The position numbers were made by a program, and so were the translations under genes. Positions 19,103-53,226 of a DNA stretch of 64,000 nt are shown here, in pieces (position 1 is the stretch's first letter; each line of letters opens with the position of its first letter). The stretch lies in assembly GCA_964247055.1 (NCBI GenBank), contig OZ176050.1, forward strand, positions 7,316,001 to 7,380,000, in the 5' to 3' direction. The notes under the pieces are model-generated. The model was given only the letters and a program-made list of their open reading frames with translations. It did no database searches and was not told where the DNA came from. This stretch comes from Paragordius varius (Eukaryota; Animalia; Nematomorpha).

Positions 19103-19730
<628 letters not shown>

Positions 19731-24703: not shown

Positions 24704-24882
24704 TCGACTGGGATAACGTTTTTATTGATTGGAAAATGTTTTTATTGACTGGAAAAATGTTTCGATTGACTGGGAAAACGTTTCGATTGACTGGGAAAAC
24801 GTTTCGATTGAATGGGTAAAATGTTTCGATTGACTGGGAAAACGTTTCGAATTATCGGGAAAATGTTAATTTCGACTGGGAA
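24704..24882. repeat. 21-bp minisatellite GACTGGGAAAACGTTTCGATT, about 8 copies, decaying at the edges
   Basis: Direct reading; accounts for the periodic RLTGKTF peptides in two listed ORFs. Confidence 0.92.
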
Positions 24883-25570: not shown

Positions 25571-27226
25571 CAGGGCTTCTTAAGTTTTTATAGTTCCCGA
25601 CCCCATTTATGATTGCTAGTTTCATAACGACACCAATAAATATAAAAGAAAAATAACCTTCGAAATAACACTCGGAAATTTTGTTGATAATATTTATCAG
25701 GATTATTTTGGTTTTAAGTGATTGACAAAAATAAATCAACATTTTTTATAAACTCTAACATTTTCTGATTCATAGTAAATTTATACAAGATACTAGCTGG
25801 CCCTGTCACGCTTCGCTGTGGCCTAGTCTCACCGATAATTATTTTTAATAATTTGCAATGAATAGAGTTAATGGAGATAAAAAAATTAAAAAAATACACA
25901 ATAGAAAGAATGTCTTTAATTATTCTTTTACGGGTTTTTGCATAGGCTCAAATAATGTTTATCCGTTGACCATATTTTATCTGTCCCTTATTAAAGTTAA
26001 TATTCAACTATCACTGGATTTAAAAGGTTTTCGTTTTACGAAATCATGGTTAAAAGTTCTATTTTGAAATTTTGTTCACACAGCTGGGATCAAGGGATAT
26101 AAAAAGTAAATCATTTGTGGTCCCTTTTTAAAGGAAAGAATGATATTATACAAATTCCCCAGAAATGTGTTTAACTGTACTCGTATGGCTTCTTAAGTGT
26201 TTTGAAAATTAGCTCCAAAACTACACCATTTTTATATGGCGTCTCAGTTTTAAAACGGTAGACCCCTACACATAGACCTATATGGAAAAAGCGCTCAATT
26301 AAATTTTTGCCTTTATAGGGCAAATATTTGTAATCATCTTTGATACCATCGTCTCATGGGTTATTTAAAAAAATATCTCAACACTAAATAATCGTTATAT
26401 CATGGCGTATTTTTAGGGCATGAAGGCCCCAAATTAACGGCTAATAAAAAAGCTCGACCTTAAGTAGTTACGGGTAATATTTCAAGCTTTTAATAAGCTC
26501 ATATGGCTTCATAAATTTTCTGTAAATTAGCTCCAAAACAACGCATTTTCTATATAATGGCGCAGTTTTAGCGGCTATCTGTTTACCCAGCAGCCAATAT
26601 TCAAAAAATGCAAGACTAAAATTTTGGCCACAGGGAATACTTGGAATCCTCAGTGATATTTAACGGTCTTATACCCTGGGCAAATAATTACTTAATTTTT
26701 TAAATAAATGGCTTACGGGGGGAAACGGGTAAAAAGAGAGTTTAAATTAAAAAACTAAGCCAACTATGTTCGGCGCAATCGAAAAAAACCACAGAAAAAA
26801 TATATTTGAAATCTAATGGTCCAACACGTTTTCCGGAAAATTGCAAAGACACGATTTTTGTGGACCTGTGTTTTCAAAAAAAACGTTTTTTACACGGAGT
26901 GGGCCCGAACTGGGAGCATAATTTAAAAAAGGGCGAAGCTATTGTCGGGGATTAATGATTATATTTTTTTGACATTTGAATTTGAATGGGTCTACCGGTT
27001 TTCCGGAAAGCCAGCATTTTTTATTTTTATAAATATATAGATTATAATGATCTTGATAGAAATGCTGGTATAAACAGTCTTTCCGAATTTGAAAAATACA
27101 TATGATATATTTATCTAGATGATTGTTATTTTTCTTTATAACAATAATTTTACAAGTTAAAAAATATTTTCTGTTAAATTTTATTTTTATCACTCGCGAC
27201 CGCGACCTATAGTTTAAGAAGCCTTG
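25571..27226. mobile_element. hAT-type MITE (about 407 bp without its insert) carrying a Helitron
   Basis: TIR CAGGGCTTCTTAA / TTAAGAAGCCTTG (1 mismatch); 8-bp TSD CTGTATAC / CTGTAAAC (1 mismatch). Confidence 0.8.
25793..27041 (-). mobile_element. Complete non-autonomous Helitron, 1249 bp, sister of the array unit
   Basis: On minus: A|TCTATATATTTATAAAAATAAAAAATGCTGGC at 27041 and GGCCACAGCGAAGCGTGACAGGGCCAGCTAG|T ending at 25793; no TSD. The first ~500 bp align by eye with the array A subunit. Confidence 0.88.
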
Positions 27227-27452
27227 CTGTAAACCACCATTTATTGATATTGTGGCGAAGCATTTTTTTGGAAACCTTGCAGATTAAATCATTATGTTTT
27301 ATTCTTCCGCTAAATGCAAACATTTAAGAAAACCGTTTTATGTTATAGCCATTAGTGCACCCATTTGTAAATACGCCTCTATGATAAACCTTTTTCAATA
27401 AAATATATATATATATTTATTAAATGCAACATACGGTTTTGGGGTGCACCAG

Positions 27453-29528
27453 ATGACTAATACGGGATTAGTCAATTTTGATTTAAGCTCTGAGTTAGAT
27501 CCCGCTGAATATTCGGAATTAAAGTAAAATGGTTAAAAATTTAGAAATAAACGGCATGATTTGGCCACAAGTGAATTTAAATTTAAAAATGTACCAACTT
27601 TACAACCTGGAAAGAAAGTTTCTCGCAGAGATTTGGATCATAAAATAGAAAAAGAAGAAAGAATTTACACCAAAAGAAATTTATTACTGTTGGATGCATA
27701 CAGCCGTCATGTTAAAATGGTTAATGATTATATTGCTTATTATGGTGGCACTGTAAAGGAGTTTTTGCGGGACAAGTTTTTTTTGTGGATATATTTTTAG
27801 AACTAAAGATAAAAGTATAAGTGATGTGTTGCATGATACGCATCAATTTATTTGGGAGCCAAGTGATGCCACGGATACTTGGTATAAAATTTTTGTATGA
27901 TTACAAGGGCCAAGCGTTTAGCGAAAAAATATTACGACAGACTTTTTCACGAATATTGCATTGTCGATCTTTCGTATTATGAAAAAGGTAACATAGGAAT
28001 GAGATGGCGGACCCAAAAAGAAGTTGTACAGGGTAAAGGTCAATTTATTTGTGGCGAAAAGCATTGCGGAAACAAGGATCGTTTAGCCAGTTGGGAGGTT
28101 AGTTTCATCTACATGGAGAGCAATAAAAAGAAAGAAGCGTTAGTCAAAGCCCGTTTATGCCCACTTTGTTCTGTCAAATTGAACTATAAATATTTAAACA
28201 AAAGACCCCAAAAACGACGGAAGAAAAACGAGAAAAATGTGGAGACCCAAACACTTTCTGGTTCAGAATCATCAAGTTCATCATCATATGCAGAAGATTC
28301 TGAAAAAGAATTAAATTTATCCAATATAACAAACAATATTGACGAATTTTTGGATGAGATTAGAACCAATATTAAACAAAATACTTTATCAGAATCTACT
28401 ACGGTAAATTCAAAATCTGACACCTCATCACGAGATCAAAAAAATTTAAATATATGGAAACAACCAACATCTTTGCTTGAACCTGCAAACGATATTCAAG
28501 ATAAATCAAGGTGAGTTTTATATACGTTTTTGTATGATGAAAAATTGATGTATTGAAACATATGATGATTTGTTAATCTTCTCTCTGATTCAAACACATA
28601 GTTACATTTAACAAAAATAATTTTATAAATTAAGACCTACTAAAAATGAAAAATTAATGGTAGCGTAATAATTTAAAAAGTTCAACATATCTTTGAATAT
28701 TGTCTAATATTTTTTAAAAACGATTTTGATACTTTTATATCTTTTTATTCTAAATACCCCCATCTATGGTGTGAAGTTTCTATGTTTTCCAAATTTAGCC
28801 ATTTTTATATTACAAGCTCTAATTAAAAGATGAGATTTTTCAAAAGAAAAATGTAAATCGATTTTTGAAAGCTTGCCTATATTGTTATATGGTATTGCCA
28901 ATTTTATCAATTTTCAGGAAAAAAAGCAATATATAAATATTAAAATAATTGTTGATAGTTAGATAACCGATTTTTATACATAGGAACTTAATTAGTGTTT
29001 ATAATATATGCCAAGTTTTTAACACAGATGCTCTCGCTTTATTAAAAATAATTAAAATTACATAATTTGATAAAGGCGTTTTAAAATTTTGCTCCTATTC
29101 TATATATTAATAGTGGGCAAAATATAAAAATTACTTTTTACCGAATTTTTTTATATGCAATTTTTAAATTTTCAGAAAAATGTTAATATTTACAGCAGAT
29201 CCTTCAATTAAATGACTTTAAAATAATTTACTAAAATATATAGGCTAATCTTGATGATTATTGACTTTTCTGTTTTTCAGTCTACTTTTTAAGTTTAAAT
29301 AAGGAGTTTTTGGACATTTTAAAGCCTTAAAATATTGATGGATGTTGGATACATTTTTAAAAACCCAATATGAAGAGGTCGATGTTAATTTTAGGATCAC
29401 AAATATTATTATATATTTTTTGCATGGTTATTTTATTTCTAATTTTGAATAATCTTTTAACATATATTACTTATTTATTTGATAGAGAGGAAGAATTTGA
29501 TGAGTATTTCAAAGACATGTTCCTGTAA
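27453..29528 (+). CDS. FRA10AC1: FRA10AC1 homolog (spliceosome C-complex associated), 5 exons
   Basis: Exons 27453-27523, 27545-27775, 27801-27881, 27908-28510 and 29486-29528; introns 21, 25, 26 and 975 nt. Motifs DAYSRHVKMVNDY, HQFIWE, WAKRLAKKYYDRLFHEYCIVDLS, GMRWRTQKEVVQGKGQFICGEKHC, EALVKARLCPLCSVKLNY and C-terminal EEEFDEYFKDMFL*. The start codon is the least certain part. Confidence 0.95.
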
Positions 29529-30015
29529 AATTTATATTATTGTCTTATAAATAAATTATATAATTAATATATTTTATATAATATAAATTGTTAATAAAAT
29601 GATGTGTAAAGCCTTTAATCATCGTCCAAAGATTTCATCACCCGCTGTTTTTCGTATTCTCATTTGATAATTTGCATTTGGTTATATTATAACAAATTAA
29701 TCTGTAAAAGAGCATCAACTATATTACAAAAACATTTTTTACTTATGATAACTATTTAAGGCTTCAATATTTAAGGTTTATCAATGTAATCCTCTTTTTA
29801 ATATGACAGTCTTATTCAATATAAAATTTATAGGAACTGACTTAAATCGCAACAAAAATTTCTATGAATTATATATTTTAAATATTTATTACACATTGAT
29901 TGATTGAATTATAATAAAAAAATTAACCCATATAATACCGTATTTTGTATTACACTGTGCGTATCAAAGATGCCATGTTTATGAATCATATATCATTCGA
30001 TACCTAAATTTAGTA

Positions 30016-30385: not shown

Positions 30386-30480
30386 TCTATTATATATAAA
30401 AATGAATTTTTAGTTTTTTTGACGATCAAAGCAAATTGAAACTCTATCGAATTTGATTAAAATATCCTATTTAGTTTGAA
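30386..30480 (+). mobile_element. Helitron-like 5' end from a different family; 3' end not found
   Basis: A|TCTATTATATATAAAAATGAATTTTTAG directly abuts the hAT remnant. End coordinate is arbitrary. Confidence 0.45.
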
Positions 30481-30779: not shown

Positions 30780-32010
30780 TGTTTTTTGAGAGACTAGATA
30801 AATCAGTGGCCCTCCATAAGCAAAGAAAGAAATTTTAATGTGGAGATTTATTGATCATTTGGCTCAAAGAAAGAATCTTATGAAATATGACACGGGGCAC
30901 ATCCTTAAACAATGAGGAGGGAGTTAATTTGACTAGATACGCACAATTTCAAATTTGGCTCGAACAAACATGTTTTTTGATAAAAGTGAAAGTTATTTGA
31001 TAGCCTAAAAAGCTGTAATTAATAAATTTTATTAGTTCCGTGAGATTCTGGGAGACTGTAAGTTTATATTAAATTTAAATTCATGAAGTGATGACTGGGT
31101 TAAGTCAGCCAAACCATTAATGCCGAGACACAAATTGTGTGTTGAAAGCGGGTAAATTCCAAGTATACAGAGACGCATGGTTCTATAAACGGGTAATAAT
31201 ACAATCACCAGAAAAGGGTAAGGCCTTTGACAACTGGGGACATAGTGGTGATAGTGATGAAATATATGTTTAAAGAGGAAATTGAAGAAATTATTTGTCA
31301 GATTAAGAAAAAGGTGCATTTATTATATAAGTTAAATAAACAGTTTAAATTTAGTCAAACTTGTGTAACCAAATAAGCCCCTATCGCAAACGATTAAAAT
31401 GTCTCAGAAAACGTTCAGAAATATAATAGCGATACTAGGAAATCAAATCAGTTTCAAGCCACGAAAGACAACTATGGACACTGTACATGCAGTTAGGAGG
31501 TTTAATATAAAGAAGAATAAGTTGCACGGGGTTTCGATTAATAGGAAAAAGCGATTGACAGGACTCCAAGAAGACTATTTTATCTCTTCAAGACTATTTA
31601 AACACTTTGGAATAAATCATGGCGTCTACGAAGGGTTTTTGTGCGTTATTTTGATTAAAGGTTAGGTTAGTATTTTATGTAGTTTATATATATTGATAAT
31701 ATATTCACTACGTTAGATTCACTGGGTGAGTTTGAATGCGGTCTGAAAGTCGATAGTTTTGGTGGTTAGCAACATAAAATGGATGATACGAGTTGGATTT
31801 TGAATGGTAGAAAAAGAAACAAATTTGGGGGAACATAAGTTTAGATAGATCGCTAACTGACTATATGAATTAAATAATTAAGAGCATTTGGGTAAAAATT
31901 TTGAGTCTTTTGCGATAGTAAATGGAAAATACAGCCCGTAACAGAAGTGGGGTGTCAAAATTTCCGAAAAAGTCATTTAATGTAACCAAAATGAAAATGG
32001 GTAGTATGAT
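30780..32010 (+). mobile_element. Decayed RTE-clade LINE, left part (split by the hAT)
   Basis: GNQISFKPRKTTMDTVHAVRR...KNKLHGVSIN resembles the RT motif QFGFMPGKSTTDAIFAVR...KLHMVFIDLEKAFD; ends ...TKMKMGSM at the TSD. Confidence 0.75.
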
Positions 32011-32136
32011 TAAGGTGACCAGATTTTTTGAAGGAAAAAGCGGGACAAATCTGAGAAGGGAGTGGGTCATTGGGGGATACAACCAAAATATTTTATACAA
32101 AAAATTTATTGTAATATTTATTTATTTTTAACAAAA

Positions 32137-35100
32137 TCTATATATTTATAAAAATGGAAAATGCTGGCTTTGTGATCTGGTACAGGAAAACCGGTAGACC
32201 CAATCAAATCCAAATATCGAAAAAATATAATCATTAATAAATGTCCCGACAATAGCTTCGCCCTTTTTTTGAAATAGGCCCCCAGTTCGGGCCCACCCCG
32301 TATGAAAAACGGGTTTTTTTTGAAAACAGAAGTCCACGAAATCGTGTTTTTGAGACAATTTTCCGGAGAACGTGTTGGACCATTCAATTTCAAATATAAT
32401 TTTTGTTTACTTATTTTCGATTGCGCCGAACATAGTCGAGCCACTTTTTTGATTTAGGCCCTCTTTTTACCCGCTCCCCCCGTAAAATGCCATTTTTTTC
32501 AAAAAACAAAGTCCACAAAAATAATTTTCTAAATCGATTTTTCGCCCTAGGTATGAGACCGTAAAAATTCAATAAAGATTCCACGTATTCCCTGTTAAAA
32601 GGCAAAAATTTTAGTCCACCGTTTATTTGATGATAACTGCTGGGTAAGGAGCTACCCGCTAAAAACTGATTTTTCATATAACTTTGTGAACTGTTTCCGG
32701 AAAACCGGTGATCCCAATCAAATCCAAATATCGAAAAAATATAATCATTAATAAATGTCCCGACAATAGCTTCGCCCTTTTTTTGAAATAGGCCCCCAGT
32801 TCGGGCCCACCCCGTATGAAAAATGGGTTAAGTCAATTTTTTGGAGAACGTGTTGGACCATTCAATTTCAAATATGAATTTTGTTTACTTATTTTTGATC
32901 GCGCTAAACATAGTCGAGTCACTTTTTTGATTTAGGCCCTCTTTTTACCCGCTCCCCCCGTAAATGCCATTTTTTTCAAAAAAAACAAAGTCCACAAAAA
33001 TATTTTTTTGATTGTATTTTTTTGCCCACGGTATGAGACTGTAAAAATTCGAGAAAGATTTTTCGTATTGCCTGTTAAAAGGCAAAAATTTTAGTCAAGC
33101 GTTTCTTTGATGATAGATGCTGAGTAAGGAGGATCTATCATATGCATAGCATGTTAAAAGATATATGGATATTAATACATTATTTATCCTCATCTATATA
33201 TTTATAAAAATGGAAAATGCTGGCTTTGTGATCTGGTACAGGAAAACCGGTAGACCCAATCAAATCCAAATATCGAAAAAATATAATCATTAATAAATGT
33301 CCCGACAATAGCTTCGCCCTTTTTTTGAAATAGGCCCCCAGTTCGGGCCCACCCCGTATGAAAAACGGGTTTTTTTTGAAAACACAAGTCCACGAAATCG
33401 TGTTTTTGAGACAATTTTCCGGAGAACGTGTTGGACCATTCAATTTCAAATATAATTTTTGTTTACTTATTTTCGATTGCGCCGAACATAGTCGAGCCAC
33501 TTTTTTGATTTAGGCCCTCTTTTTACCCGCTCCCCCCGTAAAATGCCATTTTTTTCAAAAAACAAAGTCCACAAAAATAATTTTCTAAATCGATTTTTCG
33601 CCCTAGGTATGAGACCGTAAAAATTCAATAAAGATTCCACGTATTCCCTGTTAAAAGGCAAAAATTTTAGTCCACCGTTTATTTGATGATAACTGCTGGG
33701 TAAGGAGCTACCCGCTAAAAACTGATTTTTCATATAACTTTGTGAACTGTTTCCGGAAAACCGGTGATCCCAATCAAATCCAAATATCGAAAAAATATAA
33801 TCATTAATAAATGTCCCGACAATAGCTTCGCCCTTTTTTTGAAATAGGCCCCCAGTTCGGGCCCACCCCGTATGAAAAATGGGTTAAGTCAATTTTTTGG
33901 AGAACGTGTTGGACCATTCAATTTCAAATATGAATTTTGTTTACTTATTTTTGATCGCGCTAAACATAGTCGAGTCACTTTTTTGATTTAGGCCCTCTTT
34001 TTACCCGCTCCCCCCGTAAATGCCATTTTTTTCAAAAAAAACAAAGTCCACAAAAATATTTTTTTGATTGTATTTTTTTGCCCACGGTATGAGACTGTAA
34101 AAATTCGAGAAAGATTTTTCGTATTGCCTGTTAAAAGGCAAAAATTTTAGTCAAGCGTTTCTTTGATGATAGATGCTGAGTAAGGAGGATCTATCATATG
34201 CATAGCATGTTAAAAGATATATGGATATTAATACATTATTTATCCTCATCTATATATTTATAAAAATGGAAAATGCTGGCTTTGTGATCTGGTACAGGAA
34301 AACCGGTAGACCCAATCAAATCCAAATATCGAAAAAATATAATCATTAATAAATGTCCCGACAATAGCTTCGCCCTTTTTTTGAAATAGGCCCCCAGTTC
34401 GGGCCCACCCCGTATGAAAAACGGGTTTTTTTTGAAAACACAAGTCCACGAAATCGTGTTTTTGAGACAATTTTCCGGAGAACGTGTTGGACCATTCAAT
34501 TTCAAATATAATTTTTGTTTACTTATTTTCGATTGCGCCGAACATAGTCGAGCCACTTTTTTGATTTAGGCCCTCTTTTTACCCGCTCCCCCCGTAAAAT
34601 GCCATTTTTTTCAAAAAACAAAGTCCACAAAAATAATTTTCTAAATCGATTTTTCGCCCTAGGTATGAGACCGTAAAAATTCAATAAAGATTCCACGTAT
34701 TCCCTGTTAAAAGGCAAAAATTTTAGTCCACCGTTTATTTGATGATAACTGCTGGGTAAGGAGCTACCCGCTAAAAACTGATTTTTCATATAACTTTGTG
34801 AACTGTTTCCGGAAAACCGGTGATCCCAATCAAATCCAAATATCGAAAAAATATAATCATTAATAAATGTCCCGACAATAGCTTCGCCCTTTTTTTGAAA
34901 TAGGCCCCCAGTTCGGGCCCACCCCGTATGAAAAACGGGTTAAGTCAATTTTTTGGAGAACGTGTTGGACCATTCAATTTCAAATATGAATTTTGTTTAC
35001 TTATTTTTGATCGCGCTAAACATAGTCGAGTCACTTTTTTGATTTAGGCCCTCTTTTTACCCGCTCCCCCCGTAAATGCCATTTTTTTCAAAAAAAACAA

Positions 35101-38100
35101 AGTCCACAAAAATATTTTTTTGATTGTATTTTTTTGCCCACGGTATGAGACTGTAAAAATTCGAGAAAGATTTTTCGTATTGCCTGTTAAAAGGCAAAAA
35201 TTTTAGTCAAGCGTTTCTTTGATGATAGATGCTGAGTAAGGAGGATCTATCATATGCATAGCATGTTAAAAGATATATGGATATTAATACATTATTTATC
35301 CTCATCTATATATTTATAAAAATGGAAAATGCTGGCTTTGTGATCTGGTACAGGAAAACCGGTAGACCCAATCAAATCCAAATATCGAAAAAATATAATC
35401 ATTAATAAATGTCCCGACAATAGCTTCGCCCTTTTTTTGAAATAGGCCCCCAGTTCGGGCCCACCCCGTATGAAAAACGGGTTTTTTTTGAAAACACAAG
35501 TCCACGAAATCGTGTTTTTGAGACAATTTTCCGGAGAACGTGTTGGACCATTCAATTTCAAATATAATTTTTGTTTACTTATTTTCGATTGCGCCGAACA
35601 TAGTCGAGCCACTTTTTTGATTTAGGCCCTCTTTTTACCCGCTCCCCCCGTAAAATGCCATTTTTTTCAAAAAACAAAGTCCACAAAAATAATTTTCTAA
35701 ATCGATTTTTCGCCCTAGGTATGAGACCGTAAAAATTCAATAAAGATTCCACGTATTCCCTGTTAAAAGGCAAAAATTTTAGTCCACCGTTTATTTGATG
35801 ATAACTGCTGGGTAAGGAGCTACCCGCTAAAAACTGATTTTTCATATAACTTTGTGAACTGTTTCCGGAAAACCGGTGATCCCAATCAAATCCAAATATC
35901 GAAAAAATATAATCATTAATAAATGTCCCGACAATAGCTTCGCCCTTTTTTTGAAATAGGCCCCCAGTTCGGGCCCACCCCGTATGAAAAATGGGTTAAG
36001 TCAATTTTTTGGAGAACGTGTTGGACCATTCAATTTCAAATATGAATTTTGTTTACTTATTTTTGATCGCGCTAAACATAGTCGAGTCACTTTTTTGATT
36101 TAGGCCCTCTTTTTACCCGCTCCCCCCGTAAATGCCATTTTTTTCAAAAAAAACAAAGTCCACAAAAATATTTTTTTGATTGTATTTTTTTGCCCACGGT
36201 ATGAGACTGTAAAAATTCGAGAAAGATTTTTCGTATTGCCTGTTAAAAGGCAAAAATTTTAGTCAAGCGTTTCTTTGATGATAGATGCTGAGTAAGGAGT
36301 ATCTATCATATGCATAGCATGTTAAAAGATATATGGATATTAATACATTATTTATCCTCATCTATATATTTATAAAAATGGAAAATGCTGGCTTTGTGAT
36401 CTGGTACAGGAAAACCGGTAGACCCAATCAAATCCAAATATCGAAAAAATATAATCATTAATAAATGTCCCGACAATAGCTTCGCCCTTTTTTTGAAATA
36501 GGCCCCCAGTTCGGGCCCACCCCGTATGAAAAACGGGTTTTTTTTGAAAACACAAGTCCACGAAATCGTGTTTTTGAGACAATTTTCCGGAGAACGTGTT
36601 GGACCATTCAATTTCAAATATAATTTTTGTTTACTTATTTTCGATTGCGCCGAACATAGTCGAGCCACTTTTTTGATTTAGGCCCTCTTTTTACCCGCTC
36701 CCCCCGTAAAATGCCATTTTTTTCAAAAAACAAAGTCCACAAAAATAATTTTCTAAATCGATTTTTCGCCCTAGGTATGAGACCGTAAAAATTCAATAAA
36801 GATTCCACGTATTCCCTGTTAAAAGGCAAAAATTTTAGTCCACCGTTTATTTGATGATAACTGCTGGGTAAGGAGCTACCCGCTAAAAACTGATTTTTCA
36901 TATAACTTTGTGAACTGTTTCCGGAAAACCGGTGATCCCAATCAAATCCAAATATCGAAAAAATATAATCATTAATAAATGTCCCGACAATAGCTTCGCC
37001 CTTTTTTTGAAATAGGCCCCCAGTTCGGGCCCACCCCGTATGAAAAATGGGTTAAGTCAATTTTTTGGAGAACGTGTTGGACCATTCAATTTCAAATATG
37101 AATTTTGTTTACTTATTTTTGATCGCGCTAAACATAGTCGAGTCACTTTTTTGATTTAGGCCCTCTTTTTACCCGCTCCCCCCGTAAATGCCATTTTTTT
37201 CAAAAAAAACAAAGTCCACAAAAATATTTTTTTGATTGTATTTTTTTGCCCACGGTATGAGACTGTAAAAATTCGAGAAAGATTTTTCGTATTGCCTGTT
37301 AAAAGGCAAAAATTTTAGTCAAGCGTTTCTTTGATGATAGATGCTGAGTAAGGAGTATCTATCATATGCATAGCATGTTAAAAGATATATGGATATTAAT
37401 ACATTATTTATCCTCATCTATATATTTATAAAAATGGAAAATGCTGGCTTTGTGATCTGGTACAGGAAAACCGGTAGACCCAATCAAATCCAAATATCGA
37501 AAAAATATAATCATTAATAAATGTCCCGACAATAGCTTCGCCCTTTTTTTGAAATAGGCCCCCAGTTCGGGCCCACCCCGTATGAAAAACGGGTTTTTTT
37601 TGAAAACACAAGTCCACGAAATCGTGTTTTTGAGACAATTTTCCGGAGAACGTGTTGGACCATTCAATTTCAAATATAATTTTTGTTTACTTATTTTCGA
37701 TTGCGCCGAACATAGTCGAGCCACTTTTTTGATTTAGGCCCTCTTTTTACCCGCTCCCCCCGTAAAATGCCATTTTTTTCAAAAAACAAAGTCCACAAAA
37801 ATAATTTTCTAAATCGATTTTTCGCCCTAGGTATGAGACCGTAAAAATTCAATAAAGATTCCACGTATTCCCTGTTAAAAGGCAAAAATTTTAGTCCACC
37901 GTTTATTTGATGATAACTGCTGGGTAAGGAGCTACCCGCTAAAAACTGATTTTTCATATAACTTTGTGAACTGTTTCCGGAAAACCGGTGATCCCAATCA
38001 AATCCAAATATCGAAAAAATATAATCATTAATAAATGTCCCGACAATAGCTTCGCCCTTTTTTTGAAATAGGCCCCCAGTTCGGGCCCACCCCGTATGAA

Positions 38101-41100
38101 AAATGGGTTAAGTCAATTTTTTGGAGAACGTGTTGGACCATTCAATTTCAAATATGAATTTTGTTTACTTATTTTTGATCGCGCTAAACATAGTCGAGTC
38201 ACTTTTTTGATTTAGGCCCTCTTTTTACCCGCTCCCCCCGTAAATGCCATTTTTTTCAAAAAAAACAAAGTCCACAAAAATATTTTTTTGATTGTATTTT
38301 TTTGCCCACGGTATGAGACTGTAAAAATTCGAGAAAGATTTTTCGTATTGCCTGTTAAAAGGCAAAAATTTTAGTCAAGCGTTTCTTTGATGATAGATGC
38401 TGAGTAAGGAGGATCTATCATATGCATAGCATGTTAAAAGATATATGGATATTAATACATTATTTATCCTCATCTATATATTTATAAAAATGGAAAATGC
38501 TGGCTTTGTGATCTGGTACAGGAAAACCGGTAGACCCAATCAAATCCAAATATCGAAAAAATATAATCATTAATAAATGTCCCGACAATAGCTTCGCCCT
38601 TTTTTTGAAATAGGCCCCCAGTTCGGGCCCACCCCGTATGAAAAACGGGTTTTTTTTGAAAACAGAAGTCCACAAAATCGTGTTTTTGAGACAATTTTCC
38701 GGAGAACGTGTTGGACCATTCAATTTCAAATATAATTTTTGTTTACTTATTTTCGATTGCGCCGAACATAGTGGAGCCACTTTTTTGATTTAGGCCCTCT
38801 TTTTACCCGCTCCCCCCGTAAAATGCCATTTTTTTCAAAAAACAAAGTCCACAAAAATAATTTTCTAAATCGATTTTTCGCCCTAGGTATGAGACCGTAA
38901 AAATTCAATAAAGATTCCACGTATTCCCTGTTAAAAGGCAAAAATTTTAGTCCACCGTTTATTTGATGATAACTGCTGGGTAAGGAGCTACCCGCTAAAA
39001 ACTGATTTTTCATATAACTTTGTGAACTGTTTCCGGAAAACCGGTGATCCCAATCAAATCCAAATATCGAAAAAATATAATCATTAATAAATGTCCCGAC
39101 AATAGCTTCGCCCTTTTTTTGAAATAGGCCCCCAGTTCGGGCCCACCCCGTATGAAAAACGGGTTAAGTCAATTTTTTGGAGAACGTGTTGGACCATTCA
39201 ATTTCAAATATGAATTTTGTTTACTTATTTTTGATCGCGCTAAACATAGTCGAGTCACTTTTTTGATTTAGGCCCTCTTTTTACCCGCTCCCCCCGTAAA
39301 TGCCATTTTTTTCAAAAAAAACAAAGTCCACAAAAATATTTTTTTGATTGTATTTTTTTGCCCACGGTATGAGACTGTAAAAATTCGAGAAAGATTTTTC
39401 GTATTGCCTGTTAAAAGGCAAAAATTTTAGTCAAGCGTTTCTTTGATGATAGATGCTGAGTAAGGAGGATCTATCATATGCATAGCATGTTAAAAGATAT
39501 ATGGATATTAATACATTATTTATCCTCATCTATATATTTATAAAAATGGAAAATGCTGGCTTTGTGATCTGGTACAGGAAAACCGGTAGACCCAATCAAA
39601 TCCAAATATCGAAAAAATATAATCATTAATAAATGTCCCGACAATAGCTTCGCCCTTTTTTTGAAATAGGCCCCCAGTTCGGGCCCACCCCGTATGAAAA
39701 ACGGGTTTTTTTTGAAAACAGAAGTCCACAAAATCGTGTTTTTGAGACAATTTTCCGGAGAACGTGTTGGACCATTCAATTTCAAATATAATTTTTGTTT
39801 ACTTATTTTCGATTGCGCCGAACATAGTGGAGCCACTTTTTTGATTTAGGCCCTCTTTTTACCCGCTCCCCCCGTAAAATGCCATTTTTTTCAAAAAACA
39901 AAGTCCACAAAAATAATTTTCTAAATCGATTTTTCGCCCTAGGTATGAGACCGTAAAAATTCAATAAAGATTCCACGTATTACCTGTTAAAAGGCAAAAA
40001 TTTTAGTCCACCGTTTATTTGATGATAACTGCTGGGTAAGGAGCTACCCGCTAAAAACTGATTTTTCATATAACTTTGTGAACTGTTTCCGGAAAACCGG
40101 TGATCCCAATCAAATCCAAATATCGAAAAAATATAATCATTAATAAATGTCCCGACAATAGCTTCGCCCTTTTTTTGAAATAGGCCCCCAGTTCGGGCCC
40201 ACCCCGTATGAAAAATGGGTTAAGTCAATTTTTTGGAGAACGTGTTGGACCATTCAATTTCAAATATGAATTTTGTTTACTTATTTTTGATCGCGCTAAA
40301 CATAGTCGAGTCACTTTTTTGATTTAGGCCCTCTTTTTACCCGCTCCCCCCGTAAATGCCATTTTTTTCAAAAAAAACAAAGTCCACAAAAATATTTTTT
40401 TGATTGTATTTTTTTGCCCACGGTATGAGACTGTAAAAATTCGAGAAAGATTTTTCGTATTGCCTGTTAAAAGGCAAAAATTTTAGTCAAGCGTTTCTTT
40501 GATGATAGATGCTGAGTAAGGAGGATCTATCATATGCATAGCATGTTAAAAGATATATGGATATTAATACATTATTTATCCTCATCTATATATTTATAAA
40601 AATGGAAAATGCTGGCTTTGTGATCTGGTACAGGAAAACCGGTAGACCCAATCAAATCCAAATATCGAAAAAATATAATCATTAATAAATGTCCCGACAA
40701 TAGCTTCGCCCTTTTTTTGAAATAGGCCCCCAGTTCGGGCCCACCCCGTATGAAAAACGGGTTTTTTTTGAAAACACAAGTCCACAAAATCGTGTTTTTG
40801 AGACAATTTTCCGGAGAACGTGTTGGACCATTCAATTTCAAATATAATTTTTGTTTACTTATTTTCGATTGCGCCGAACATAGTGGAGCCACTTTTTTGA
40901 TTTAGGCCCTCTTTTTACCCGCTCCCCCCGTAAAATGCCATTTTTTTCAAAAAACAAAGTCCACAAAAATAATTTTCTAAATCGATTTTTCGCCCTAGGT
41001 ATGAGACCGTAAAAATTCAATAAAGATTCCACGTATTCCCTGTTAAAAGGCAAAAATTTTAGTCCACCGTTTATTTGATGATAACTGCTGGGTAAGGAGC

Positions 41101-44100
41101 TACCCGCTAAAAACTGATTTTTCATATAACTTTGTGAACTGTTTCCGGAAAACCGGTGATCCCAATCAAATCCAAATATCGAAAAAATATAATCATTAAT
41201 AAATGTCCCGACAATAGCTTCGCCCTTTTTTTGAAATAGGCCCCCAGTTCGGGCCCACCCCGTATGAAAAACGGGTTAAGTCAATTTTTTGGAGAACGTG
41301 TTGGACCATTCAATTTCAAATATGAATTTTGTTTACTTATTTTTGATCGCGCTAAACATAGTCGAGTCACTTTTTTGATTTAGGCCCTCTTTTTACCCGC
41401 TCCCCCCGTAAATGCCATTTTTTTCAAAAAAAACAAAGTCCACAAAAATATTTTTTTGATTGTATTTTTTTGCCCACGGTATGAGACTGTAAAAATTCGA
41501 GAAAGATTTTTCGTATTGCCTGTTAAAAGGCAAAAATTTTAGTCAAGCGTTTCTTTGATGATAGATGCTGAGTAAGGAGGATCTATCATATGCATAGCAT
41601 GTTAAAAGATATATGGATATTAATACATTATTTATCCTCATCTATATATTTATAAAAATGGAAAATGCTGGCTTTGTGATCTGGTACAGGAAAACCGGTA
41701 GACCCAATCAAATCCAAATATCGAAAAAATATAATCATTAATAAATGTCCCGACAATAGCTTCGCCCTTTTTTTGAAATAGGCCCCCAGTTCGGGCCCAC
41801 CCCGTATGAAAAACGGGTTTTTTTTGAAAACACAAGTCCACGAAATCGTGTTTTTGAGACAATTTTCCGGAGAACGTGTTGGACCATTCAATTTCAAATA
41901 TAATTTTTGTTTACTTATTTTCGATTGCGCCGAACATAGTCGAGCCACTTTTTTGATTTAGGCCCTCTTTTTACCCGCTCCCCCCGTAAAATGCCATTTT
42001 TTTCAAAAAACAAAGTCCACAAAAATAATTTTCTAAATCGATTTTTCGCCCTAGGTATGAGACCGTAAAAATTCAATAAAGATTCCACGTATTCCCTGTT
42101 AAAAGGCAAAAATTTTAGTCCACCGTTTATTTGATGATAACTGCTGGGTAAGGAGCTACCCGCTAAAAACTGATTTTTCATATAACTTTGTGAACTGTTT
42201 CCGGAAAACCGGTGATCCCAATCAAATCCAAATATCGAAAAAATATAATCATTAATAAATGTCCCGACAATAGCTTCGCCCTTTTTTTGAAATAGGCCCC
42301 CAGTTCGGGCCCACCCCGTATGAAAAATGGGTTAAGTCAATTTTTTGGAGAACGTGTTGGACCATTCAATTTCAAATATGAATTTTGTTTACTTATTTTT
42401 GATCGCGCTAAACATAGTCGAGTCACTTTTTTGATTTAGGCCCTCTTTTTACCCGCTCCCCCCGTAAATGCCATTTTTTTCAAAAAAAACAAAGTCCACA
42501 AAAATATTTTTTTGATTGTATTTTTTTGCCCACGGTATGAGACTGTAAAAATTCGAGAAAGATTTTTCGTATTGCCTGTTAAAAGGCAAAAATTTTAGTC
42601 AAGCGTTTCTTTGATGATAGATGCTGAGTAAGGAGTATCTATCATATGCATAGCATGTTAAAAGATATATGGATATTAATACATTATTTATCCTCATCTA
42701 TATATTTATAAAAATGGAAAATGCTGGCTTTGTGATCTGGTACAGGAAAACCGGTAGACCCAATCAAATCCAAATATCGAAAAAATATAATCATTAATAA
42801 ATGTCCCGACAATAGCTTCGCCCTTTTTTTGAAATAGGCCCCCAGTTCGGGCCCACCCCGTATGAAAAACGGGTTTTTTTTGAAAACACAAGTCCACAAA
42901 ATCGTGTTTTTGAGACAATTTTCCGGAGAACGTGTTGGACCATTCAATTTCAAATATAATTTTTGTTTACTTATTTTCGATTGCGCCGAACATAGTGGAG
43001 CCACTTTTTTGATTTAGGCCCTCTTTTTACCCGCTCCCCCCGTAAAATGCCATTTTTTTCAAAAAACAAAGTCCACAAAAATAATTTTCTAAATCGATTT
43101 TTCGCCCTAGGTATGAGACCGTAAAAATTCAATAAAGATTCCACGTATTACCTGTTAAAAGGCAAAAATTTTAGTCCACCGTTTATTTGATGATAACTGC
43201 TGGGTAAGGAGCTACCCGCTAAAAACTGATTTTTCATATAACTTTGTGAACTGTTTCCGGAAAACCGGTGATCCCAATCAAATCCAAATATCGAAAAAAT
43301 ATAATCATTAATAAATGTCCCGACAATAGCTTCGCCCTTTTTTTGAAATAGGCCCCCAGTTCGGGCCCACCCCGTATGAAAAATGGGTTAAGTCAATTTT
43401 TTGGAGAACGTGTTGGACCATTCAATTTCAAATATGAATTTTGTTTACTTATTTTTGATCGCGCTAAACATAGTCGAGTCACTTTTTTGATTTAGGCCCT
43501 CTTTTTACCCGCTCCCCCCGTAAATGCCATTTTTTTCAAAAAAAACAAAGTCCACAAAAATATTTTTTTGATTGTATTTTTTTGCCCACGGTATGAGACT
43601 GTAAAAATTCGAGAAAGATTTTTCGTATTGCCTGTTAAAAGGCAAAAATTTTAGTCAAGCGTTTCTTTGATGATAGATGCTGAGTAAGGAGTATCTATCA
43701 TATGCATAGCATGTTAAAAGATATATGGATATTAATACATTATTTATCCTCATCTATATATTTATAAAAATGGAAAATGCTGGCTTTGTGATCTGGTACA
43801 GGAAAACCGGTAGACCCAATCAAATCCAAATATCGAAAAAATATAATCATTAATAAATGTCCCGACAATAGCTTCGCCCTTTTTTTGAAATAGGCCCCCA
43901 GTTCGGGCCCACCCCGTATGAAAAACGGGTTTTTTTTGAAAACACAAGTCCACAAAATCGTGTTTTTGAGACAATTTTCCGGAGAACGTGTTGGACCATT
44001 CAATTTCAAATATAATTTTTGTTTACTTATTTTCGATTGCGCCGAACATAGTGGAGCCACTTTTTTGATTTAGGCCCTCTTTTTACCCGCTCCCCCCGTA

Positions 44101-47100
44101 AAATGCCATTTTTTTCAAAAAACAAAGTCCACAAAAATAATTTTCTAAATCGATTTTTCGCCCTAGGTATGAGACCGTAAAAATTCAATAAAGATTCCAC
44201 GTATTCCCTGTTAAAAGGCAAAAATTTTAGTCCACCGTTTATTTGATGATAACTGCTGGGTAAGGAGCTACCCGCTAAAAACTGATTTTTCATATAACTT
44301 TGTGAACTGTTTCCGGAAAACCGGTGATCCCAATCAAATCCAAATATCGAAAAAATATAATCATTAATAAATGTCCCGACAATAGCTTCGCCCTTTTTTT
44401 GAAATAGGCCCCCAGTTCGGGCCCACCCCGTATGAAAAACGGGTTAAGTCAATTTTTTGGAGAACGTGTTGGACCATTCAATTTCAAATATGAATTTTGT
44501 TTACTTATTTTTGATCGCGCTAAACATAGTCGAGTCACTTTTTTGATTTAGGCCCTCTTTTTACCCGCTCCCCCCGTAAATGCCATTTTTTTCAAAAAAA
44601 ACAAAGTCCACAAAAATATTTTTTTGATTGTATTTTTTTGCCCACGGTATGAGACTGTAAAAATTCGAGAAAGATTTTTCGTATTGCCTGTTAAAAGGCA
44701 AAAATTTTAGTCAAGCGTTTCTTTGATGATAGATGCTGAGTAAGGAGTATCTATCATATGCATAGCATGTTAAAAGATATATGGATATTAATACATTATT
44801 TATCCTCATCTATATATTTATAAAAATGGAAAATGCTGGCTTTGTGATCTGGTACAGGAAAACCGGTAGACCCAATCAAATCCAAATATCGAAAAAATAT
44901 AATCATTAATAAATGTCCCGACAATAGCTTCGCCCTTTTTTTGAAATAGGCCCCCAGTTCGGGCCCACCCCGTATGAAAAACGGGTTTTTTTTGAAAACA
45001 CAAGTCCACAAAATCGTGTTTTTGAGACAATTTTCCGGAGAACGTGTTGGACCATTCAATTTCAAATATAATTTTTGTTTACTTATTTTCGATTGCGCCG
45101 AACATAGTGGAGCCACTTTTTTGATTTAGGCCCTCTTTTTACCCGCTCCCCCCGTAAAATGCCATTTTTTTCAAAAAACAAAGTCCACAAAAATAATTTT
45201 CTAAATCGATTTTTCGCCCTAGGTATGAGACCGTAAAAATTCAATAAAGATTCCACGTATTCCCTGTTAAAAGGCAAAAATTTTAGTCCACCGTTTATTT
45301 GATGATAACTGCTGGGTAAGGAGCTACCCGCTAAAAACTGATTTTTCATATAACTTTGTGAACTGTTTCCGGAAAACCGGTGATCCCAATCAAATCCAAA
45401 TATCGAAAAAATATAATCATTAATAAATGTCCCGACAATAGCTTCGCCCTTTTTTTGAAATAGGCCCCCAGTTCGGGCCCACCCCGTATGAAAAACGGGT
45501 TTTTTTTGAAAACACAAGTCCACAAAATCGTGTTTTTGAGACAATTTTCCGGAGAACGTGTTGGACCATTCAATTTCAAATATAATTTTTGTTTACTTAT
45601 TTTCGATTGCGCCGAACATAGTGGAGCCACTTTTTTGATTTAGGCCCTCTTTTTACCCGCTCCCCCCGTAAAATGCCATTTTTTTCAAAAAACAAAGTCC
45701 ACAAAAATAATTTTCTAAATCGATTTTTCGCCCTAGGTATGAGACCGTAAAAATTCAATAAAGATTCCACGTATTACCTGTTAAAAGGCAAAAATTTTAG
45801 TCCACCGTTTATTTGATGATAACTGCTGGGTAAGGAGCTACCCGCTAAAAACTGATTTTTCATATAACTTTGTGAACTGTTTCCGGAAAACCGGTGATCC
45901 CAATCAAATCCAAATATCGAAAAAATATAATCATTAATAAATGTCCCGACAATAGCTTCGCCCTTTTTTTGAAATAGGCCCCCAGTTCGGGCCCACCCCG
46001 TATGAAAAATGGGTTAAGTCAATTTTTTGGAGAACGTGTTGGACCATTCAATTTCAAATATGAATTTTGTTTACTTATTTTTGATCGCGCTAAACATAGT
46101 CGAGTCACTTTTTTGATTTAGGCCCTCTTTTTACCCGCTCCCCCCGTAAATGCCATTTTTTTCAAAAAAAACAAAGTCCACAAAAATATTTTTTTGATTG
46201 TATTTTTTTGCCCACGGTATGAGACTGTAAAAATTCGAGAAAGATTTTTCGTATTGCCTGTTAAAAGGCAAAAATTTTAGTCAAGCGTTTCTTTGATGAT
46301 AGATGCTGAGTAAGGAGTATCTATCATATGCATAGCATGTTAAAAGATATATGGATATTAATACATTATTTATCCTCATCTATATATTTATAAAAATGGA
46401 AAATGCTGGCTTTGTGATCTGGTACAGGAAAACCGGTAGACCCAATCAAATCCAAATATCGAAAAAATATAATCATTAATAAATGTCCCGACAATAGCTT
46501 CGCCCTTTTTTTGAAATAGGCCCCCAGTTCGGGCCCACCCCGTATGAAAAACGGGTTTTTTTTGAAAACACAAGTCCACAAAATCGTGTTTTTGAGACAA
46601 TTTTCCGGAGAACGTGTTGGACCATTCAATTTCAAATATAATTTTTGTTTACTTATTTTCGATTGCGCCGAACATAGTGGAGCCACTTTTTTGATTTAGG
46701 CCCTCTTTTTACCCGCTCCCCCCGTAAAATGCCATTTTTTTCAAAAAACAAAGTCCACAAAAATAATTTTCTAAATCGATTTTTCGCCCTAGGTATGAGA
46801 CCGTAAAAATTCAATAAAGATTCCACGTATTCCCTGTTAAAAGGCAAAAATTTTAGTCCACCGTTTATTTGATGATAACTGCTGGGTAAGGAGCTACCCG
46901 CTAAAAACTGATTTTTCATATAACTTTGTGAACTGTTTCCGGAAAACCGGTGATCCCAATCAAATCCAAATATCGAAAAAATATAATCATTAATAAATGT
47001 CCCGACAATAGCTTCGCCCTTTTTTTGAAATAGGCCCCCAGTTCGGGCCCACCCCGTATGAAAAATGGGTTAAGTCAATTTTTTGGAGAACGTGTTGGAC

Positions 47101-47579
47101 CATTCAATTTCAAATATGAATTTTGTTTACTTATTTTTGATCGCGCTAAACATAGTCGAGTCACTTTTTTGATTTAGGCCCTCTTTTTACCCGCTCCCCC
47201 CGTAAATGCCATTTTTTTCAAAAAAAACAAAGTCCACAAAAATATTTTTTTGATTGTATTTTTTTGCCCACGGTATGAGACTGTAAAAATTCGAGAAAGA
47301 TTTTTCGTATTGCCTGTTAAAAGGCAAAAATTTTAGTCAAGCGTTTCTTTGATGATAGATGCTGAGTAAGGAGTATCTATCATATGCATAGCATGTTAAA
47401 AGATATATGGATATTAATACATTATTTATCCTCATCTATATATTTATAAAAATGGAAAATGCTGGCTTTGTGATCTACAGGAAAAACGGTAGACCCATTC
47501 AAATCCAAACTTCGAACCCCCCCCCCCAGAAGTCCGAAGGACTTCCTCGGGCTGCGTAGCAGCACGAGATTCACGCTAG
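32137..47579 (+). repeat. Helitron-derived tandem array: 14 units (13 x 1056 bp, 1 x 1570 bp) plus a terminal 145-bp mini-Helitron
   Basis: Unit starts (A|TCTATATATTTATAAAAATGG) at 32137, 33193, 34249, 35305, 36361, 37417, 38473, 39529, 40585, 41641, 42697, 43753, 44809, 46379 and 47435. Each unit is 5' end + 514-bp subunit A + diverged truncated subunit B + ~60-bp spacer. Flanks rejoin as AACAAAA|TACATT without a TSD. Confidence 0.95.
47435..47579 (+). mobile_element. 145-bp mini-Helitron with both termini
   Basis: TC start; C11 tract; hairpins GAAGTCC-GAA-GGACTTC (47529-47545) and CTCGGGCTGC-GTA-GCAGCACGAG (47546-47568); CTAG|T seven nt later. Confidence 0.88.
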
Positions 47580-47689
47580 TACATTATAAATATAAAAAAA
47601 ATTTGTACCTCACAGGTTGTTTGTACCTTATTCAATAAATTTCCATGTGCACGAACAAAGGGTGAAGTTATTTTAATATTCTAGAAAAA

Positions 47690-48400
47690 AATAATAAAGA
47701 CAAAATCATCACAAAGTGCGCTGGGTGATGCAAGAAGCGGCACAAAAATATTTTTAACAATTTAGCGAATAATCTTAATCAAAACATTATTGGCAGATAC
47801 GCAACGTTCAAACAGCTATAATGATTTGTTAGCCCTGGATGTGGAAAATATAGATGTTAAAATGCTCGAATATTGTAGATCTGTTGGTTAGCTCTTTTGC
47901 CAGCGATTGATATATTTATAAAAATGTGATCTCCTAGAATCCTATTTTTTATCACAGGACAAAGGTCAAAATTCCAAGTCAAAAAAGGTTAGAAAATAAT
48001 TCTATACCATTACCTAATCGCAATATTATAAAGCATCCAGAAAAACAAGGCTCAATGAATAGCCAGAGTATAAAAATGTTTTATACAAACAGAAACGATT
48101 ATTTGGAAGACAAGACGGTGCACAATGACACTTTTTGATGAAGTCTCATTATTAAATAAATATATTGAATGAAAACTTATATTATGGACAACAGAAAAAA
48201 ATACGTAGGATAGAAATGGTTAAAATAATCATTTTTAAACAAATTATGTTCCATACAATATTATTTTAATTGTAGAATTTGCATTATCTTTACCTGAACC
48301 ACTGCTATTGAACGCGTTTTTCCACAGTAAATTAAGTAAGAACACGGAATCAAATTTAAATGTTGAATAAATTATGAAGACTTATACAATATTTTACGTG
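47690..48400 (+). pseudogene. Heavily deleted second hAT transposase fragment, inverted relative to the main copy
   Basis: ARSGTKNIFNNLANNLNQNIIG, YFLSQDK, LFDEVSLLNKYI and IVEFALSLP...AIERVF fragments parallel the minus-strand transposase. Confidence 0.75.
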
Positions 48401-48442
48401 ATTTGGTTTATTTTTTTACACAAAAACTTTAAAGAAAATATT

Positions 48443-50285
48443 TTATTCTTTGGTATATTTTTTGTTTGAGTGAATGCGTTTTAGCAGATTGTCATCATTT
48501 TTTAAAATATTGTAGAAGTCTTCACAAGAATTTGTCAAATTATATTTGAGAGATAAAACGGCCTTTAAAAAACATTTAAATTTGATTTTTCCGATGTCCA
48601 CACCTGATTTACTGTGGAAAAAACGCGCTCAGTAGCAGCGTGGGTTCCAGGTAAAGATCGAATTCCACAATTTTTAAAATATTATTGTATGTAATATAGT
48701 TGGCTTCAAAATGATGAAATATTTCCAACCATTTCTTTTCTACTGTATATTTTATTTTGTCCATAATTTAAGTTTTTCATTATTAATATATCTTTAACTA
48801 ATGATACTTCAGAAAAAAGATCATTTTCTGAAAGATTACCTTTTGATAAATTTTGGGAGCAGATATAATCAAATAATTTTTGAACATCGCGCCAAATTAA
48901 ATTCTGATTTTAATGTTATCCAATGAAAATGATCAATTTCAATGAAGTGGGTCGTCCAGTCTTCCAAATAATCTTTACAGAACATTTTTATATGGTACAG
49001 GATGTCTTGGCGATTTATTAAACCTTGTTTTTCTAAATTATTTATTATATTGCGGATGGTTAATAGTATAAAATTATTTTCTAACCGTTCTTGACATTGG
49101 AATTTTAGGTTACTAACTTCATTGGCTACTTCGATTGCCGAAATTTTGTCACCTTCTATAAATTTAATAACATTTTGAAAGAGAGAAGTTGGATTATGTA
49201 AGAATTCTAACCATATTTTTGAACAATCACTTTCAAAAAACTTTTTTAAAGTTGTAGGACATTTGTCCTGTGATAATAAAAAAGATTTTAAAGGATCATA
49301 CATTTTTAAAATTCTTTCGATAGCTGGCATAAAAGCTAACCAACGAGTTTTACAATATCCAAGCATTTTTTGATATTGAACTTCTGCATTTTCACAGAAT
49401 TCTTTAAGCGTTTCCTACCGTGTATATAAAAAAATAGGATTATATTTTAACAACTACATTTTCCACATCTATGGGTAACAAATCAGCAGCTGTTTGAATA
49501 ATGTGTATTATATGCGCTGCACACCCAACGCCAATAATGTTTTGATTAAGATTATCTGTTAATTCATGAAAAATATTTTTTTGTTCCTCTCCTTGCTTTT
49601 CCACCAAAGTTCATATTGGTGTTGTCAGCGCAATATACGATAATTTTGTATTTTAAATTATTTTTTTGCATTATTGAAGTAAATATTATTTCGGAATTTT
49701 CACCGGGTAGGGAAATTAAATCTAAAATTTTAATTTTTACTCCGGTTTCTGAATCAAAATATCTCATCAAAGTGGGAAATAATTTTGTTTCATGGTGATT
49801 TGATGCATCAGAGTATAGCGATATGGAATTAATTTTCAGCAAATCTTTTTGTATTTCAGAAAATATATGTGGCGAAAGGACATTGCACACAATGGCTTTA
49901 GCCTTTGTACGGGCACATGTAAATTTTTTTATGGAATAACGTGCGAATAACTTGTGAGGTACAGTCCATAGATCTAAAGGAATGATTGTGATTAACGGCG
50001 TGAAAAGATAACACGCACTCAGCTAGTGCCAAATTCTTTTCTTCCTCTCCAAAAGCGGTTTTTCAAAAAAATCGCTCATTTTGTAAGATGATGTCGCCAT
50101 ATCTAAACATTTTTTATGTTTCTGTGTTTCCATATGCTTTGTAATATCATGCTTGCCGCCATGTGCTAGGGTGAATCCCCCTCGCATATAGGACATTTAA
50201 CAAATGATTCATTCTTCGTTTTTTTAATAAAAGGAAAATCCTTCATTAATTCATCGTTGAATTTACAACCTCTTTTTGTGCTCAT
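48443..50285 (-). pseudogene. hAT transposase pseudogene (BED zinc finger, DDE/D core, dimerisation domain) with frameshifts and stops
   Basis: MSTKRGCKFNDELMKDFPFIKK...CPIC...HGGKHDITKHMETQKH, ISLYSDASN, YCADNTN, GVGCAAH, CKTRWL, AATERVFS. Confidence 0.92.
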
Positions 50286-50298
50286 GTTTATAAACTAC

Positions 50299-50570
50299 TA
50301 TTAGTATAATAAATATTATATTACCTTAATTTTCTGTGATAAACGTGTAAGGTACCGATTTGTGGTATCAATTTGTCTTTTAAGCTACCGATTTGTGGTA
50401 TTAATTTGGCTTTTTAATAATGTTGGCAAGTAATAAAACTAAAATATTAGTATAATAAATATTATATTACCTTAATTTTGTGAAATAAACGTGTAAGGTA
50501 CCGATTTGTGGTATCAATTTGTCTTTTAATCTAGAGATTTGTGGTATTAACTTGGCTTTTTGATAATAAT
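50299..50570. repeat. About 146-bp tandem duplication upstream of the transposase ATG
   Basis: TATTAGTATAATAAATATTATATTACCTTAAT starts at 50299 and 50445; internal GATTTGTGGTAT motif occurs four times. Confidence 0.8.
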
Positions 50571-50838
50571 GACAGTAGTAGTAGGAAGTATAGTGTATAA
50601 TCACATGATATAAATTCGAAAAAATAAATATTTTTAATTTAAAATTAAAAATTTTAATTTAAAATTGAATAGATTTTAAAGATATTTAATGATAAAAAAT
50701 TTAAACGGACAAAAAAAATTTATTTGTATTAAAAAAATATTTTTTTATCTAATTGTGAAAAAGCGGGACATTTAAAAACGTAGCAGGAAGCGGGACAAAG
50801 TGTGAAAAAGCGGGACGTCTGGTCACCTTAAGTATGAT

Positions 50839-51090
50839 GTGTGAGATAACAAGAAAAGACACAGTTAAGAATAGTACGAATGTTTATTCGATATCAAGGA
50901 GAATGCAAAAAATATACTATGTTAATTAGGGTATATTAAAAGGAGATTATCCCACCATAAAAACGGTAACTGTCATATAGTTAAAAGAAAACGAGGACGC
51001 GGATGCCCTAAAGAAAGCAGCTCTAAATGAAGTTTTGTGGCGAGATGTCCCTCCGACCGTTTTCACGAGTGATATCACGTAATGTAAAAA
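50839..51090 (+). mobile_element. Decayed RTE-clade LINE, right part
   Basis: Continues MCEITRKDTVKN...KRKRGRGCPK, matching the RTE motifs EMKMLRWMCGVTRKDRIRN and RGRGRPK once the hAT is removed. Confidence 0.75.
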
Positions 51091-52271: not shown

Positions 52272-53226
52272 TAGATTTTTACAGCAGATTAGAGAGATTT
52301 AAAATTAACATGTGGTTAGCAAAGGGTTAGTGTCAAAAGGTTTTGTTTTGAAAATATATTATCCACTTGGATGCAACTAATTTTCAATGCTTTGATTCAA
52401 ATTGGGGTCATTATGATCCTAGGCCTACATCTGATATCAAAAATACAGGGTCAATTGATACCATTGCAAAAGTTTTTATTTATATAACATTGATGATCCG
52501 AAGCATATAAAAGATTCATTTGAAAATAACATCTTATGACTTATTTTATAGATACTTTAATGGTTATAAATTAGCCAACAAACATGGTGCTCAATCAAAA
52601 AATTAACTTCAATTTAGCATTGAATTCAATAAAGATAAATCCTAAAAATGTTTTAACACTCCATGACCTTTTCGGGTTTAAAACTACCATCAATATGTCA
52701 AGACAAAAAAGGGAAGCAATCATTTATCAAAATACGTCGATTTATATGAAACTTAAATCTAAAATATCTTTGTTATTTTGGCTCATAATATATTTTTAAT
52801 TATGAAGCATGAATATAAAATGAAACCGTCTCTTTCAGTAGTATTTCAATATCTATTTTACACTGCATAATTTAGAATAATTTTACGCCTCACGAACAAT
52901 TAATAAATATCTTAATAGACAAATAAAAATATGTTTAAGTTTTTAGGCGCATGATACAAAAAAATATTTATTTATAATGGTAAAAATTATCTTCTCTAAC
53001 TTTATCACCGCCAATCCTTTGATTTTTTGTTTTTAAATTGGATACAACTACATATAAGTTCTCCGATTCAAATTGGAGCCTTTTGTGGCCACCCGCCTGT
53101 TATAAATGATATTTTTAAAAATATGGAAAAAGAAACTATTGTAAAAAAATTTATTTATATAACAATGATGTGCCGAAATATAAAAAAAGCTTTGTTGAAA
53201 AACACTTTCTATAACTTATGTACTGA

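Follow-up and report, generated by a model that had tools for sequence, protein, structure and literature searches.

A Helitron array with fifteen 5' ends and a single 3' end in Paragordius varius carries the marks of homology-driven exchange

We observed that a tandem Helitron array in the nematomorph Paragordius varius, which has 15 5' ends (heads) and one 3' end, carries a pattern of sequence variants that shows homology-driven exchange at work among its units. The array lies in the 64-kb stretch of DNA analysed here (the window). Recombination probably accounts for its history throughout, from a two-headed composite through a founding duplication in the heads to growth by unequal exchange. 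The features on which this reading draws are collected in Table 1.

An exact search for the 21-nt head returned 15 matches between 32137 and 47435, compared with a shuffle expectation of 0.03. The heads are spaced by 13 intervals of 1056 bp and one unit of 1570 bp beginning at 44809. The initial annotation had described a 1056-bp unit, which holds for 13 units and fails for this one, where an additional 514-bp subunit gives the order A-A-B. The first head is preceded by AACAAAA and all 14 of the others by TATTTATCCTCA, and the 14 internal junctions are identical, reading CCTCA/TC (the slash marks the boundary) without a terminator. Canonical Helitrons open with a 5' TC directly after a host A and close with CTRR followed by a host T, with a GC-rich hairpin ~10-12 nt upstream; the array has ends of this kind, its CTAG/T lying at 47579 and its hairpins ending at 47568. 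The insertion point is A/T, with flanks AACAAAA/TACATTA, and there is neither a target duplication nor a terminal inverted repeat.

Within the array, the sole GC-rich hairpin with CTAG/T is the one that ends at 47579 (z -4.7). No CTRR was present within 60 bp upstream of the head at the two junctions scanned, the spacers being identical except at one site, and the spacer folds no better than shuffled sequences (z 0.1-0.2). These head, CTRR and fold scans confirm the earlier reading of 15 A/TC heads, internal junctions free of hairpin-CTAG and a single 3' terminus at 47579. The internal hairpin-CTRR/TC junctions of a head-to-tail concatemer are absent. Structurally, the array falls under the definition of a Xiong-type array, namely tandem truncated units that each have a 5' end, and one 3' end. 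We rejected a candidate cryptic internal terminator where subunit A ends, a GGGTA hairpin that precedes CTAA; the candidate is weak (z -2.2), lies off the unit boundary and is not followed by T.

Table 1 Coordinates of the array, its parts and the surrounding elements in the window
Feature	Position	Strand	Remarks
Whole Helitron-bounded array	32137-47579	+	14 head-to-head units and terminal mini-Helitron, 15,443 bp
First 5' end (TC head)	32137-32178	+	42 bp identical across all 15 heads
Remaining 14 heads	33193, 34249, 35305, 36361, 37417, 38473, 39529, 40585, 41641, 42697, 43753, 44809, 46379, 47435	+	
Subunit A (514 bp), unit 1	32168-32681	+	~77% identity to body of dispersed sibling
Subunit B, unit 1	32682-33131	+	older internal tandem copy of A (84%), 3'-truncated
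Spacer, ~60 bp	33132-33192	+	AT-rich, ends CCTCA; no hairpin, no CTRR
1570-bp unit (A-A-B)	44809-46378	+	extra 514 bp; out-of-register exchange inside 111-bp tract common to A and B
Mini-Helitron, 145 bp	47435-47579	+	15th head and only 3' end
Double GC-rich hairpin and terminal CTAG, then T	47529-47579	+	hairpins at 47529-47545 and 47546-47568
Dispersed full-length non-autonomous sibling, 1249 bp	25793-27041	-	same A/TC head, one A-like body, own GC-rich CTAG/T end
Host hAT-type element	32011-50830	-	perfect 13-bp TIRs (32011-32023, 50818-50830)
Left 8-bp target duplication, AGTATGAT	32003-32010	+	
Right 8-bp target duplication, AGTATGAT	50831-50838	+	
hAT-like transposase, broken	48430-50290	-	several stops, frameshifts; weak Dimer_Tnp_hAT match, E 0.025, below cut-off
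Relic of same transposase	47604-48447	+	inverted, internally deleted, ~80% identical; abuts right flank of array

Within each unit, two ~84% identical subunits form an older dimer, and the order is head, subunit A (514 bp), subunit B and ~60-bp spacer. Subunit B starts ~31 bp inside the head and hence lacks the TC. The head of the mini-Helitron matches the long heads perfectly over 42 bp and at 92% over ~82 bp; the homology between heads that had been put at ~70 bp is real, and its size needs correcting to these values. Because all internal heads are of the long type after base 42, the founding junction lies within bases 1-42 of the head. As anatomy, these data support the composite proposed in the initial annotation, in which a 3'-truncated long copy, a ~60-bp spacer and a 145-bp mini-Helitron stand in a row and the head-to-head segment was amplified.

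The spacer has no significant match elsewhere in the window, whether sought as host hAT DNA, as sibling body or as a patchwork of filler; it may be element body, host DNA or repair filler. Its likeness to the head in inverted orientation and to the right-hand flank (TACATTAT) is at chance level (p 0.17-0.97). At 33110-33141, the end of subunit B recurs in inverted form in the opening 9-12 nt of the spacer, with variable site 996 at the mismatch. Snap-back synthesis at the truncation point is possible, the 9-nt fold-back being borderline (p 0.04, uncorrected). The repeated 106-aa ORFs on the minus strand had no Pfam match, and an Rfam search gave no family of note.

The initial annotation had set as a test that dispersed family members begin at the TC of the array. 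A search of the window yielded one such sibling, with the same head in different flanks, and its 5' end at 27041 lies at the same A/TC. The TC is therefore a real Helitron end. Over its first 480 bp the sibling is 77% identical to the array, and its tail is different. Further Helitron-like TC heads occur at 30386 (+), 3149 (+) and 51450 (-), with no terminator found nearby.

The 14 units vary at six columns only, with a mean divergence of 0.26%. None of the six variable sites is a singleton, and the units fall into 10 haplotypes. Of the 15 site pairs, 10 fail the four-gamete test, the variants call for a minimum of three recombination points, and divergence between units grows with the distance between them (permutation p 0.004). 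A single rolling-circle burst with point mutation afterwards would have to place 31 mutations at six sites and was rejected (upper bound ~1e-54). In simulations, copying of whole units in the TC phase never produced an incompatible pair. The breakpoint of the A-A-B unit lies inside an internal 111-bp tract that is identical in A and B, far from any TC, and the older A/B duplication likewise excluded the TC. The variant pattern, together with the out-of-register exchange in the A-A-B unit, shows that homology-driven exchange is active in the array.

The observed mixing goes beyond simple recombination models, in which an incompatible fraction of at least 0.6 was reached in just 0-2.7% of samples. 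A two-parent test for mixing of two parent arrays or diverged units gave p 0.025. Very high conversion, the mixing of two parent arrays or units, or assembly mosaicism or haplotype mixing must therefore be added to the simple models.

On this evidence, we propose that a non-autonomous canonical Helitron became two-headed when the 60-bp spacer came to link a 3'-truncated long copy (head-A-B) with a mini-Helitron from its own subfamily. The mini-Helitron supplies the sole terminator; the arrangement is seen in the sequence, and self-insertion with read-through may have been the route to it. One duplication would then have set the phase at TC. Its breakpoint lies in the 42-bp identical heads, and homology may have driven it. 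Thereafter, with 1056 bp of homology available, ordinary unequal exchange and conversion would enlarge and mix the array, and the recombination recorded in the variants could be the work of host machinery. Once two units are present, a crossover anywhere in the 1056 bp preserves the TC phase, so that the heads are required for the first duplication alone. It follows that 15 heads do not imply 14 RepHel events.

Two routes of amplification had been offered at the outset, RepHel acting from origin to origin and unequal exchange, and for the growth phase the second is now directly evidenced by the variants and simulations. As for the founding event, judged from sequence, a RepHel cut at the TC would leave the same product as a crossover within the 42 bp of identity. 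Two points count against recombination at this step: the first 42 bp, where the junction lies, also contain the exact nick site, and 42 bp is short for homologous recombination.

It is unlikely, although the architecture is exactly what such a model predicts, that the array arose along the lines of the published rolling-circle model (Xiong et al. 2016). On that route, a Helitron circle would lose its terminator through recombination between the two heads, RepHel would roll truncated units out of it as a concatemer, and recombination would scramble the variants after integration. Helraiser circles without a hairpin still form and transpose (PMC4778049). However, units left by a single burst should be identical or differ by singleton variants, which does not fit six sites with no singleton among them, and the left-to-right variant gradient suits stepwise local growth rather than a rolling-circle burst. 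Since the variant pattern needs recombination anyway, the burst is an extra step.

We consider it very improbable that RepHel nicked at one head and cleaved and rejoined at the next, so that a terminator-free 1056-bp circle seeded the array. Release from origin to origin is known for the initiators of geminiviruses and rolling-circle plasmids. The junction is compatible with a cut exactly at A/TC. Helraiser requires its left end but can dispense with the right end and the hairpin, and it uses de novo ends that have no hairpin, such as CTTG, CTAC and AATG (PMC4778049); the unit here ends in CTCA. Nevertheless, a crossover within the 42 bp of identity would leave a junction that looks no different, the 64-kb window contains no RepHel ORF, and both of the other datable duplications, the A/B dimer and the A-A-B unit, ignored the TC. 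Our literature search found no paper showing RepHel release at a second left end, nor one excluding such release. The broader proposition that circles released between two left ends, with no right end, found many-headed satellites that recombination only reshuffles is correspondingly hard to credit.

There is also a slight chance that the locus is real and its copy number or variant order was inflated in assembly, or that two haplotypes, or similar arrays, were merged into a mosaic. The lack of singletons and the heavy mixing, which exceed the simulations, would suit such an effect, as would the array's length of 15.4 kb, near that of typical accurate long reads. Against it, the sixteen homopolymers (of at least 6 bases) in each unit show no length variation, the 10 haplotypes are distinct and follow a positional gradient, and the unique flanks close with matching hAT TIRs and target duplication.

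Our preferred reading, recombination throughout, concerns an array that works like a Xiong-type array and whose architecture is already known in plants and fungi. Across 27 plant genomes, Xiong, Dooner and Du (2016; doi 10.1111/tpj.13314) described many arrays that combine multiple 5' ends with one 3' end, with several to hundreds of repeats, as summarised in PMC12628747; PMC6591975 also covers them. In their model, as outlined in PMC8268682, a circle in which the 5' end is repeated internally recombines between these repeats and loses its terminator, and the following round makes truncated units. In these accounts, the plant arrays are alike in having many TC heads, one hairpin-CTRR tail and truncated units. 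They are partly decayed, whereas the present array is from an animal and its units are near-identical (0.26% mean divergence). Unlike those described in the same accounts, it lies in a gene-containing region, inside a hAT element, and its variants show later unequal exchange.

The Fusarium element FoHeli (Chellapan et al. 2016, PMC5148889) has multiple 5' termini and one 3' terminus, and forms two-headed composites via self-insertion. It resembles the present composite in having at least two 5' ends and one 3' end, but it is of the Helitron2 type and repeats <200 bp, in comparison to the canonical TC...CTAG element here, with a 1056-bp unit repeated 14 times. DINE-1, DINE-TR1 and the oyster Cg170 (PMC12628747, PMC8268682) likewise show satellite growth between Helitron ends, and the A/B dimer is such an internal repeat; their central repeat normally excludes the terminus, whereas the higher-order unit here includes the 5' end. 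Helraiser circles and concatemers (PMC4778049, PMC5876387) share the A/TC start, the hairpin-CTAG/T end and the lack of a target duplication, but their head-to-tail junctions read CTAG/TC and those of the array CCTCA/TC without a hairpin. The initial annotation had put the array forward as an undescribed system. This is refuted by the published many-headed, single-tailed arrays, the terminator-loss model and the Fusarium two-headed composites. Its premise that Helitron arrays are normally joined head to tail at CTRR-TC is incomplete, given the same published arrays.

The array is positioned 126 bp inside the left end of its host element, which we identified as hAT-type: its 13-bp TIRs are perfect, and the 8-bp duplication AGTATGAT stands at either end (chance match ~6e-5). 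Only unnamed homologues of the transposase were found. The two hAT-like transposase copies, 47604-48447 (+) and 48432-49963 (-), meet tail to tail at their C-termini around a centre at ~48440; both lie within one TIR/TSD pair, and the plus copy is heavily deleted. An empty site was sought, but the window has just the one copy of the host hAT, relatives in Logan were without the end, and a pattern scan of metagenomes gave no match. A degenerate frame resembling a LINE reverse transcriptase, recognised by eye at 30780-32010 and 50839-51090 (+), is interrupted by the hAT element; Pfam and PDB searches of the outer flanks of the hAT element gave no confirmation of it. The 5' region of the hAT element has a 146-bp tandem duplication (50299-50567). 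Nematomorph genomes are reported to contain hAT and Helitron elements (bioRxiv 10.1101/2024.06.11.598342).

Elsewhere in the window, we observed a FRA10AC1 gene at 27440-29530 (+), for which the one exon searched matched Pfam PF09725 (E 1e-40) and had its best match in Gordionus (70%); its introns are apparently of 26 nt. A ubiquitin-conjugating enzyme-like gene at 19163-19730 (+) has very short GT-AG introns of ~21-29 nt. Two copies of a second TIR family (TAATGTGACCAGA), 74-83% alike, are located at 15519-16389 and 59588-60913, and a short duplication around CGTTAGGT flanks the first. A 21-bp tandem repeat of ~7.6 copies occupies 24692-24867, with a similar motif near 31520-31560, and a 285-bp direct duplication (92%) is found at 53225-53506 and 54444-54727.

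In conclusion, the array is a clean, young animal case of a transposon becoming satellite DNA. Its flanks are unique, its variants are informative, and an unexpanded sibling lies 5 kb from it. An arrangement of many heads and one tail, which in plants has been read as evidence of rolling-circle amplification, can, once founded by a single event, grow and persist through ordinary recombination. If RepHel does close head-to-head circles, a terminator-independent step would be added to Helitron biochemistry, and this locus would be a ready substrate.
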